Shown: piece after piece, positions 1 to 3,771 of the stretch | How positions within the stretch are numbered: position 1 is the stretch's first letter | How the letters are laid out: the number at the start of each line of letters is the position of its first letter | NCBI GenBank assembly: GCA_004431415.1 | Contig: QPMI01000502.1 | Location: 62,001-126,000 of the forward strand | Reading direction: 5' to 3' | DNA: 64,000 nucleotides | Origin: Cyanophora paradoxa CCMP329 | Taxonomy: Eukaryota; Plantae; Glaucophyta | Program-made: the position numbers and the translations under genes | The notes under the pieces: generated by a model | Databases searched by the model: none | What the model saw: only the letters and a program-made list of their open reading frames with translations | Told to the model about the DNA's origin: nothing

Positions 1-390
1 CCAGCCATCGATCTGCGGCGCTATTGATCAGTGCCTCGTTTCGCATGCAAGCTACAGCGCAGCTGCAGCACGCGCTGCGGACCTGATACTGATACTTGAA
101 CACAATGAAGATGAGAACGACCATCACAGTGTAGAATGCGATGTCCAGCTTCGTCGACAACCGCATCCCCTCCGGCCTCGCCTGCGCATGCAGGGCGTCG
201 ACCCACGAAGCGCCACCTGCATGAGGCGCACCTCTTTCATCTGCATGATTCTCTGCTTCAGCTCAGCGAGGCTCTGCTTCTCCTCCTCCAACTCCCTGTC
301 GAGCTCTGAGTTGCGGCTGGATACCGCCGCTGGTGCCAGATCTTGACCCTCCGCTCCATCGCCGGTATCATTCTCTCGCCTGCGCCGCAT
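1..390 (-). CDS. Small coiled-coil protein with a transmembrane helix (3' end runs off the window)
   Basis: ATG at 390; exon 1 MRRRREND...ELEEEKQSLAELKQRIMQMKE; phase-0 GT-AG intron (231-182) joins to ARPEGMRLSTKLDIAFYTVMVVLIFIVFKYQYQ (hydrophobic helix); next GT-AG intron ends near 13. Confidence 0.6.
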
Positions 391-533
391 GTTCGAGAGG
401 CGGCGCACCGGGCGCAACTTTACCCGGGTACAGTCCCTTCAGCTATTCACAGCAGCCAGCAACAACCTCGGATCTACAGCAGCGGCGCGAGCTATTGCAG
501 TCCCGGAGGGTGTGGGAGAGCGCGTAGATCACG

Positions 534-3490
534 ATGTCCGACGCGGGAGAGGATGAGGGTCCTCAGCCCATTGCGGTACTTGTGCTCGGCATCTTAGCAT
601 GGCGTCCAGCGCTCACAGCGGGCCGCGCAGGAGTACGAGGGCCCCAGGAACGACCTAGGCGAGCGCCACGGGCTGGGCAAGACGAAGTACCCGAACGGTG
701 CGACGGCCGGAGCGCTGCGGCGGCGAAGCGCGCTGACCAGGCGGACGCAGGCGACGTGTACGAGGGGCAGTATGTGAACGGCCTCAAGGAAGGCAAGGGC
801 AAGTACATATACAAGCTGAAGGAGAAGATGACGGTGCAAGCGTACTATGAAGGAGACTGGGTCGCTGGGAAGAAGCAGGGCCACGGAACTTTCTTCTTTG
901 AGAACGGCGGCAAGTACATCGGTGAGCGGGAGGCAAGATTGCCTTAGCTTTGGATGCCGCGCGCTCAAGCTACCCGCAGGCGAGTTCGCAGAGGACCAAA
1001 GGCACGGCCAAGGCACCTACGAGTATCCGAACGGCGACATTTACACAGGCCTGTGGGCGCGGGGGAAGAAGCACGGCCCTGGGAAGTACTACTGCAAGGC
1101 CAACAGCTCGACGGTGCGCGCCTGCGACCAAGCCGCGCCCCGGCCCGCTTGGCTGACGTGCCTGCGCGCCCTGCAGTTCGAGGGCCACTGGTTCAACGGG
1201 CAGTTCCGCAGCGGCGAGTGGCTCGCGCACAAGGACAAGTACAAGGGCTCTTTCCAGACCGACAAGCCGGTCCGCGCCGCGCCGCGGGCCTTCCGGTTCC
1301 TTTTCCTTCCTCGGCGCCGACGGGGCGGCAGATCGGGCGGGGCCACTACACGTTCTCGAACGGGAACGCGCAAGAGGGGACGTACCAGGTGACGAAGAAA
1401 GTGGTGAACGAGGAGGACCCCGAGGCGGAGGGCGCCACGGTGGAGGAGCTCAAGTGGAACGGCCGGCCCGTCGTCTCCCACCGTGCGCCCGTCTCCCGCC
1501 CGCCCGGCGCCGGCTGCCCGCGCGGGCAGGCCCGCTGAGGGCGGGCGGCGCGGCGCAGAGCTGGACGACGGGACGCTGCCGCCGGGGGTGGACGAGGACG
1601 AGTCGGCGGAGTGGGGCAAGGACCCGCACAGCTTCATCCAGGCCCGCTTCGAGCGCTACGGCTCCGTCTTCCGCACCCGCGTGCGCCCCCGCCCCACCCC
1701 GCCCCGCCGCCCGCGCCCGCTGCAGGGCGCCGACGCCGCCGCCCCTGCCGGCGCAGGTCCACGGCACGCCGGCGATCGGCCTTGTGGGCCCCGCCAAGTA
1801 CCAGCTCTCCCTCGACAGCAGCCAGTTCACCCGGGAGGACGCCTACCCCGCCGGCTTCTCCGAGGCGCGCCGGCCCCCGCCCCCCGCCCCCCCTCCCCCT
1901 CACGAAGTCCGCCTCCGTTGACGAGGCGCCGCGCGCTGTGCAGCTGCTGAACGGGCAGGCGTGCGCGCTGCTGAACGGGCCGGACCACACGCGGCGGAAG
2001 GCGGTGCTGATGAAGGCCTTCGCGGCGGAGCGGATCCCGTCGTTCCTGGCGGCGTTCGACAAGGCGTTCGCGGCGCGGGCCAAGGGCTGGGAGGCGGCGG
2101 CGACGATCACGATGAAGGACGAGGCGGCGGCGCTGATGCAGGAGGTGGGCATGAAGCTCTTCTTCGGCTACCACGACGCGCAGTCGCTCGAGCACGTCGC
2201 CGAGCTCTACGCCGTCTGGGGCAAGGGCCTCTTCGCCAAGCAGACCTCCGCCGCCTTCGCCGCGGCCGTCAAGGCCCGCGACGAGCTCCTCGAGCTCCTC
2301 GCCTGGTCCCTCAAGACCCACGCGGAGGGCAAGTTCCCCGCCTGGCGGCCCCTGCCGCCGCCCCCGGAGCCCACCGCCGAGGAGGCGGCTCCCGAGGCGG
2401 CCCCCGAGGCGGCCCCCGAGGCGGCCCCCGCGGAGGTGCCGGCGGAGGGCGAGGCGCCGGCGGAGGGGCGGAGGGCCAGCCGGCCGCCATCCCGAGGGCG
2501 ACGAGGAGGCGGCGGCGGCAGCGGCGGCGGCGGGGCGCCGGGCGAGGCAGCCCCGCCGCGGAGGCGGCACCGGAGGCGCCGGCAGAGGCGGCGGAGCCGC
2601 CGCCGCCGCCGCCGCCGCCGCGGACGCTGTTCACGGAGGACGAGCTGCCGCCGCCGGTGCCGGAGGGCGGCGAGGCGGGGGCGGAGGGCGGGGCGGAGCC
2701 GGCGGAGCCGCCGCCGGAGCTGGCGGAGGGGGAGGAGCCGCCGCCGCCGCCCCCGAAGCCGGCGCCGGAGCCGAAGGACGACTTCGTGCTGCACCTGGCG
2801 GCGGCGGCGGTGGCGGCGGGGGCGGACCCCGAGAGCCTGGCGCCGGAGCTGCTCTTCCTCTACACGGGCTGCGCGGGGTCGCTGCGGGCGAGCCTCGTCT
2901 GGCTGGGCCTCGCCCTCGCCCAGAACGAGGCGGTGCTGAAGAAGGCCCAGGCGGAGGTCCTGCGCGTCTCGCCCGCGGGGCCCGTCACCCCGGAGGCGAT
3001 GGAGCAGCTGCGCGTGTGCGAGCAGGTCACGCGGGAGGTGCGGCGGCGGTACCCCATCATGCCGGCCCAGACGTACCGCACGGCGCGCGAGGCCGTCCCC
3101 GTGGACCGCTTCACCATCCCCAAGGGCTGGCTCGTCATCGCCGCCATCACGGCCGTCCACATGGACCTCTCCTCGTGGAGCAAGCCGGAGGAGTTCGACT
3201 ACACGCGCTTCGAGCCGATGCGCGACTCGGCGCGCCCGCCGGGCTCGTACGTGCCGCACGGGGGCGGCGAGATGGCCTCGACGCACCGCTGCCCCGCGGA
3301 GGAGCTCGTGACGGGGGCGATGAAGCTGCTGGCCGTGCACATGCTGCGCACCTACAGCCTGGCCCTCGAGGAGGAGCAGCCGCTGGAGCTCGAGAAGGGG
3401 GCGGGGCGCTTCCCCCTGCCCCAGTCCGGCGTCCGCATCACCGTCGCCCGCCTGCCCCAGGAGGAGGGCGAGGGCGGCGAGGCCGCGTAG
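534..3490 (+). CDS. RSPH1: Radial spoke head protein 1 (MORN repeats) fused in frame to an atypical CYP152-like cytochrome P450
   Basis: Exons 534-575, 631-697, 751-921, 980-1113, 1177-1269, 1332-1482, 1559-1680, 1757-1864, 1944-3490. N-half [28 protein letters not shown]...KWNG is colinear with RSPH1 as I recall it. C-half has EVRR (ExxR), WSKPEEFDYTRF and HGGGEMASTHRCPAE (heme Cys 3290-3292). One apparent frameshift in the Pro/Glu/Ala tract ~2460-2560, likely a homopolymer error. The symbol refers to the N-terminal module. Confidence 0.8.
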
Positions 3491-3771
3491 CCGCAGCCGC
3501 TCTGTGCACGGTAGATGTGCTGAAGAGTGCAGGGACCGACAGTCCGCCGCCTCCAGTGCTCGCGAGGGGCAGCGTGCGCCGCTCTCTGCTCTTTGGTGCT
3601 ATGGCTACTAGGCTAGTGACTTGCACGGGCCCCGGGGTTGGTGCACGTGCAACGTATACGTAGGGTCGCCATATATACTACTATACTAACTGCAAGGGTT
3701 GGATCATCTTGGATGTAGTATATATATCAAGCAAGAGGGGAGCGGGAACTCCGAGGGCGCTAGCGAGGGAG

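Follow-up and report, generated by a model that had tools for sequence, protein, structure and literature searches.

Radial-spoke heads connect the central pair to the dyneins and relay signals of a mechanical and a chemical kind, and how chemistry enters this relay is poorly understood. The spoke-head protein RSPH1, a MORN-repeat protein, was proposed to act as an elastic contact to the C2b-C2d projections, and the length of the RSP1/RSP10 proteins ranges from 221 to 876 amino acids among taxa (PMC12399478). Metabolic enzymes also occur in spokes: adenylate kinases and malate dehydrogenase are found in RS3, along with the pseudophosphatase STYXL1 (PMC12399478). Here we describe a gene of the glaucophyte Cyanophora paradoxa CCMP329 that joins an RSPH1-type MORN domain in frame to a cytochrome P450 domain. 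It occupies positions 534-3490 of a 64-kb stretch of contig QPMI01000502.1 (positions 62,001 to 126,000 of the forward strand), which is called the window below. The fusion protein is almost certainly real, and a spoke-head subunit of the RSPH1 type carrying a P450 appendage is the explanation that we favour, if by a modest degree of confidence.

The six MORN exons (534-1482) and the P450 exons (1559-3490) form a single open frame of 811 codons (812 including the stop codon), counting one extra G that is present in RNA. Translation of the three forward frames showed that the ATG at 534 is preceded by an in-frame TAG (525-527). The preliminary description of this DNA had proposed a phase-matched junction across an intron at 1483-1558, and these coordinates proved exact. 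Position 1482 closes the last MORN exon (...TCC CAC C), and the exon that follows opens at 1559 (AG CTG GAC); the fusion intron between them (1483-1558, 76 bases, 89% G+C) has GT..AG ends, the split codon C|AG encodes Gln, and the reading ...VVSH-Q-LDDGTLPPG runs in phase across the junction. Retention of this intron would bring in an in-frame stop codon, TGA 1536-1538, and the product would be a plain RSPH1 of 237 residues. The P450 half opens at an LPPG motif that is typical of soluble bacterial P450s and brings neither a start codon nor a membrane anchor; its first in-frame ATG, in the segment LMKAF (2010-2012), lies about 100 residues inside the domain. The earlier claim that the P450 has no ATG of its own before LMKAF, no anchor and no room for a promoter is supported.

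For transcript evidence, contigs from four public sequencing runs (X1, X4, X8 and X15) were placed on the window. The runs X1, X4 and X8 come from three separate studies and each yielded one contig with all eight joints, including 1482|1559, which is the RNA support that the preliminary description had called for. The splice from MORN to P450 is genuine RNA, sighted independently three times. The contig of X15, a run from 2012, covers 200-1529 unspliced and contains none of the joints, so X15 represents DNA. The X1 contig extends into a divergent upstream gene, from which a minus-strand intron (182-231) has been removed. Because this contig merges two genes, contig continuity is weak evidence, and it is the splice joint that carries the argument. 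The low-complexity repeats at 2493-2632 and 2713-2832 were masked, and no listed RNA contig bridges them.

The single read-through frame that had been described holds in RNA, but a frame change in the window at 2464, inside the P450, had been missed: the N-terminal and C-terminal parts of the domain are read in different frames on either side of it. The RNA contigs of X1 and X4 have five Gs in the run at 2465-2468, as compared to four in the window, and show no other listed difference. With an extra G after 2464 one frame continues to the TAG at 3488-3490; from the unedited letters the frameshifted protein would end near 2937, before the I helix. Since the RNA contigs match the window at every other listed position, the likeliest cause of the discrepancy is a homopolymer error of the assembly.

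A second fusion of this kind was found in another glaucophyte. The window exons were searched singly and never joined, and whole-protein comparisons and fold prediction were done with the orthologue found in this way. When the C-terminal exon segment 2780-3487 was compared to 1.84 billion representative proteins (HMMER), three matches fell below E = 1e-30: P0002, P0001 and P0003. P0002 is a protein of 762 amino acids from Gloeochaete wittrockiana, represented in EukProt and MMETSP1089, in which the Pfam MORN and p450 domains are both present; it is encoded by a complete open reading frame on two transcript contigs from two assemblies. All window exons align to it in order with 36-65% identity. 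Its junction, KWDGQNVVSH-V-IDDGTLPPG, is at the same place as in Cyanophora, and an acidic low-complexity insert occupies the position that corresponds to the Cyanophora insert. Given this collinearity of all exons and the shared junction, the fusion is probably older than the split between the two genera. P0001 (919 amino acids), also from Gloeochaete, contains the same P450, is 5'-truncated to start within the last MORN repeats, and continues past a poly-Glu tail into a region of the DUF3752 type; most probably the assembly has made a chimera here over a GAG repeat, though an isoform is possible.

The search for the combination of MORN and p450 domains that had been suggested earlier thus returned one other organism, G. 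wittrockiana. No further protein with both domains was found among the 1.84 billion representatives (HMMER) or by word-index search among 5.8 billion proteins, the first of these word-index searches being swamped by MORN repeats. A metagenome scan gave neither a further fusion nor a nearer relative of the P450 (identity at most 34%), and the Cyanophora fusion protein itself is absent from the protein collections searched. No paper was found on a MORN-P450 or RSPH1-P450 protein, or on this P450 in Cyanophora. The Gloeochaete protein is already in public collections, unnamed and with both Pfam domains, and the pairing is otherwise unreported in the literature found.

The N-terminal part of about 219 residues is, by its sequence, an RSPH1-type MORN domain. 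In one unbroken stretch (150 bits, E = 5e-43), residues 2-213 of P0002 align with human and mouse RSPH1 (residues 6-215), and likewise with a third RSPH1 chain; this alignment takes in the acidic N-terminus, the motif YEGGRNE-x-GERHG and the KW near the end. RSPH1 is outscored by MORN1 only when overlapping short repeat matches are summed. Single window exons match RSPH1 at E values of 1e-8 to 7e-21. The assignment follows from this single end-to-end match, from the repeat-wise nature of the MORN1 match and from the RSPH1 matches of exons taken alone, and derivation of the MORN half from RSPH1 is very probable. Against P0002, the Chlamydomonas proteins RSP10 and RSP1 reach about 86 bits. The preliminary description stated that Chlamydomonas RSP1 would carry a cyclic-nucleotide-binding region behind its MORN repeats; the chain 7jrj_F in the Protein Data Bank (PDB; 814 amino acids) has its MORN match at about residues 568-709.

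The MORN half is encoded on the forward strand, as are all features of this gene. Exon 1 (534-575) contains the start codon and the acidic N-terminus of the RSPH1-like half and matches residues 1-13 of P0002. Exon 2 (631-697), delimited by RNA joints, encodes the motif EYEGxRN-x-GERHG that opens RSPH1 and has a weak Pfam MORN match. MORN repeats follow in exon 3 (751-921; Pfam MORN, E = 1.2e-12) and exon 4 (980-1113; Pfam MORN, E = 1.5e-14; RSPH1, E = 7e-21), and degenerate ones in exon 5 (1177-1269), which is 58% identical to residues 138-168 of P0002. Exon 6 (1332-1482) holds the end of the RSPH1-like domain (...ELKWNGRPVVSH), and the alignment of P0002 with RSPH1 reaches through here. Introns 1 to 5 (576-630, 698-750, 922-979, 1114-1176 and 1270-1331) are each confirmed by an RNA joint in X1, X4 and X8.

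Beyond the fusion intron, exon 7 (1559-1680) encodes the opening residues of the P450 (LPPG motif, FIQARFERYG) and exon 8 (1757-1864) its N-terminal beta region, both supported by RNA joints, alignment and mapping of P0002. Intron 7 (1681-1756) is again found as a joint in X1, X4 and X8; intron 8 (1865-1943) has GC..AG ends and corresponds to the RNA joint 1862->1942 with two bases of slack. Exon 9 (1944-3490) encodes the remaining P450 up to the TAG at 3488-3490 and is supported by RNA and by Pfam p450 (PF00067, E = 1.6e-26); the match at 2603-3487 scores 93.6 bits as compared to a cut-off of 22.8. Ahead of the I helix lies a disordered, low-complexity insert (2346-2776) of some 143 residues in which Pro, Ala, Glu and Arg abound; it is at the same place in P0002, where the model puts it in the G-H loop. 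Within this otherwise acidic, proline-rich insert there is an Arg-rich run, RRRRRQRRRR (2495-2540, CGG repeats), with no counterpart in Gloeochaete. The eight introns are 53-79 bases long with a G+C content of 62-91%, and the gene region as a whole has 60-85%. The MORN exons have 54-67% and the P450 exons 71-78% G+C, which could reflect amino-acid make-up or a foreign origin of the P450 half.

Among known proteins, the closest to the P450 half are uncharacterised bacterial P450s (P0003, P0004, P0006 and others) with 35-39% identity. The AlphaFold model of the P0002 P450 domain (predicted template modelling score, pTM, 0.79) has CYP120A1 from Synechocystis (PDB 2ve3) as its best structural match, with a template modelling (TM) score of 0.85; disorder is predicted at 230-291, the G-H loop insert, and the Cys loop is also weakly predicted. 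CYP120A1 is also the closest solved structure by sequence to the bacterial relatives (P0004, E = 6e-72). It differs in having the acid-alcohol pair of the I helix (AGHET) and a short GGGLREC loop, whereas the acid-alcohol pair is missing throughout the clade of the glaucophyte and related bacterial domains (TGCAGS in Cyanophora, by alignment) and the haem loop of the clade is lengthened, GxGPxxGHRCxG, similar to that of CYP152. The CYP152 enzymes (P450 BS-beta, SP-alpha, OleT) are likewise soluble, use no redox partner, have no acid-alcohol pair and show a haem loop lengthened to GGG....HRC; their Arg-Pro carboxylate clamp of the I helix is missing here. The NCBIfam model CypC (CYP152) is the top family match, but its scores of 56.5 bits for the window exon and 111.5 bits for P0002 are far under the cut-off of 600, and the alignment shows no RP in the I helix where P0271 has LRP. 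By this score, the missing clamp and the tree described below, membership of CYP152, which the HRC loop suggested, was ruled out.

The bacterial relatives (P0003, P0004 and P0006; Kofleriaceae, Polyangiaceae, Thermoanaerobaculia, Microbacterium and others) share the GxGPxxGHRCxG loop and lack the acid-alcohol pair. They differ from the glaucophyte proteins in being stand-alone or fused to YndJ and DUF5995, never to MORN, and in having no large G-H loop insert. A quick tree search on 222 C-terminal columns, with CYP152 as outgroup and Shimodaira-Hasegawa-like approximate likelihood ratio test (SH-aLRT) values as the only support, placed the P450s of Cyanophora and Gloeochaete as sisters (99) inside a bacterial set of 31 rows (100) from Acidobacteriota, Myxococcota, Actinomycetota and Pseudomonadota. 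A branch with an SH-aLRT value of 100 separates this set from a mostly cyanobacterial, CYP120-like set of 65 rows. The simplest reading of the tree is that the P450 half was acquired from a non-cyanobacterial bacterium. A plastid (cyanobacterial) origin via CYP120 was rejected, as the loci from cyanobacteria carry the short loop of CYP120 and make up a clade apart, and the glaucophyte domains themselves fall outside the CYP120-type set in the tree. A crude comparison of open reading frames around the bacterial relatives gave no conserved gene neighbours. The P0003 gene lies directly after genes for a RoxA-like dihaem cytochrome c and an alpha/beta hydrolase; P0005, P0272 and L057 are other bacterial relatives with notable contexts, with fusions of about 1350 residues that comprise YndJ, DUF5995 and P450.

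The Cyanophora P450 retains the axial Cys (codon 3290-3292) in the haem loop (GGGEMASTHRCPAEE, 3254-3304) with His two residues before it, the EXXR motif (EVRR, 3035-3046), the PERF-like motif FDYTRF (3194-3211) and the C-helix HxxRR motif (1983-2000); the I helix (2846-2923) contains TGCAGS. Because Cys, His and the C-helix Arg are kept, the Cyanophora copy probably still binds haem. In Gloeochaete the haem loop has Gln-Arg-Pro-Pro-Ser where Cyanophora has His-Arg-Cys-Pro-Ala, and both Gloeochaete assemblies agree on this. Seven bacterial relatives of the clade share 48 invariant positions, of which Cyanophora keeps about 36 and Gloeochaete 30. The two P450 domains are still 46% identical, and therefore selection acts on the domain in either lineage, whereas the function common to them cannot require a haem thiolate, since Gloeochaete has lost the Cys. 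The reading of this protein as a haem-thiolate enzyme or sensor may hold for Cyanophora as far as the axial Cys goes, but hardly as a conserved property, with Pro for Cys and Gln for the His two residues before it in the sister lineage. The accompanying hint at peroxide gains some support from the missing acid-alcohol pair and the CYP152-like HRC loop of the clade.

Taken together, the protein may be pictured as follows. The MORN half would dock on the radial-spoke head like RSPH1, as its homology suggests, and the P450 half would replace the floppy acidic tail of RSPH1 and project from the spoke head toward the central apparatus, where its fold would serve as a bulky appendage or a ligand-binding module. 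A location in the spoke head has somewhat better than even chances. Since the sister lineage lost the thiolate ligand, the conserved role in glaucophytes is most likely that of a structural or ligand-binding spoke-head module and not that of a classical monooxygenase. Catalytic activity of the P450 in Cyanophora is conceivable but doubtful; any chemistry would be peroxide-driven or an isomerisation with no need for a reductase, because the residues by which P450s activate O2 together with a redox partner are absent from the clade. A stronger proposal, that a haem domain on the spoke head, where this meets the central apparatus, lets a peroxide, gas or lipid signal alter beating directly, without a reductase, and so represents the first P450 in an axoneme, is speculative and rather improbable.

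Several points weigh against the picture as a whole. The flagellar placement is derived from RSPH1 homology, and if the genome holds a second, plain RSPH1 gene, the fusion might be a paralogue that has taken on another role. Against the predicted haem binding in Cyanophora stands the Ala that replaces the Gly two residues after the Cys. Segment 2493-2832 has no displayed RNA contigs, and its continuity would follow from the open frame and the P0002 orthologue. X4 bins from 1470 to about 2485 are some 8-12 units deeper than the spliced contig accounts for, and a minor unspliced form is possible. Concerning the frame break, the DNA run X15 has no contig bearing the extra G and apparently four Gs, and a true frameshift allele in some strain is possible.

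The surplus X4 depth near the fusion intron is unexplained and would suit an arrangement of two separate genes, in which the joined RNA would be no more than a minor read-through product or a chimera of the assembly; the X1 contig that runs on into the divergent upstream gene shows that continuity can mislead. This arrangement is largely refuted and very improbable, as three studies show a canonical GT..AG splice that keeps the phase, some 100 residues of the P450 part pass before a start codon occurs, and Gloeochaete has the identical junction site in a complete open reading frame in two assemblies. A real fusion could also reside elsewhere in the cell, where a duplicate of the RSPH1-type MORN domain would serve the P450 as a handle for oligomerising or for binding membranes or the cytoskeleton. 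MORN arrays adjoin many unrelated domains (kinases, caspases, TIR, DENN), MORN1-type proteins equal RSPH1 in summed score, and a MORN handle might substitute for the membrane anchor that the P450 lacks. This possibility appears unlikely to us: a single stretch of similarity to RSPH1 spans the MORN half from end to end, N-terminal motif included, which no other MORN protein shows, and Cyanophora and Gloeochaete are both flagellate.

A third option, along the lines of the preliminary description, leaves the protein on the axoneme but makes its P450 an active, partner-independent haem-thiolate enzyme or sensor (a peroxygenase, a hydroperoxide isomerase, or a gas or peroxide sensor) that tunes beating. 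The retained Cys, His, EXXR and HxxRR in Cyanophora, together with most of the clade-invariant positions, are in line with it, and in its HRC loop and its want of an acid-alcohol pair the domain recalls the peroxide-using CYP152 enzymes. It is hard to reconcile with the haem loop of Gloeochaete, where Cys is replaced by Pro, His by Gln and Gly by Ser in a domain that has stayed so similar, and we hold it to be a minority possibility. An RSPH1-type spoke-head subunit with a P450 appendage is the reading that is retained here.

The 5' untranslated region (443-533) is placed by the RNA contigs of X4 and X8, which begin at about 443-453, and the short 3' untranslated region (3491-3542) by RNA contigs ending at 3531-3542. 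The divergent upstream gene (124-453, minus strand) has a coiled-coil-like open reading frame, and its transcript ends at about 414, some 40 bases from where the RNA contigs of the fusion gene begin. Odd joints at 1617->3460 (X1, X4) and 1695->2410 (X15) have no splice-site ends and only 20 bases on one side; most likely they stem from contigs of other G+C-rich repeats.

If the spoke-head assignment is true, a subunit with a haem-enzyme fold would offer a concrete entry point for chemistry into the signal relay, and it would be the first P450 attached to a cytoskeletal machine, beyond membranes or cytosol. Were the protein not flagellar, it would still represent an unreported means of tethering a P450 that has no anchor. 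The gene would also record how an early-branching algal lineage gained a bacterial P450 and joined it to a core flagellar gene, and the orthologue pair with and without the thiolate is a natural experiment on an enzyme fold turning structural.

Two known kinds of protein are touched by this locus: spoke-head proteins that have been extended in particular lineages, and naturally occurring fusions of P450s. The whole MORN domain of RSPH1/RSP1 (PDB 8j07_A, 7dmp_A, 8wzb_F) is collinear with P0002, and the window exons are in turn collinear with P0002; unlike RSPH1, which ends in a disordered, acidic tail, the fusion has a P450 domain of about 590 residues at this place, presumably within the spoke. 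The enzymes and pseudoenzymes of radial spokes, which comprise the RS3 set and the MORN-bearing, inactive PPIL6 (PDB 9fqr_Hb), provide a precedent for metabolic-enzyme folds, some of them inactive, in axonemal spokes. None of these modules is a P450 or a haem protein, and in this respect the glaucophyte fusion differs from all of them.

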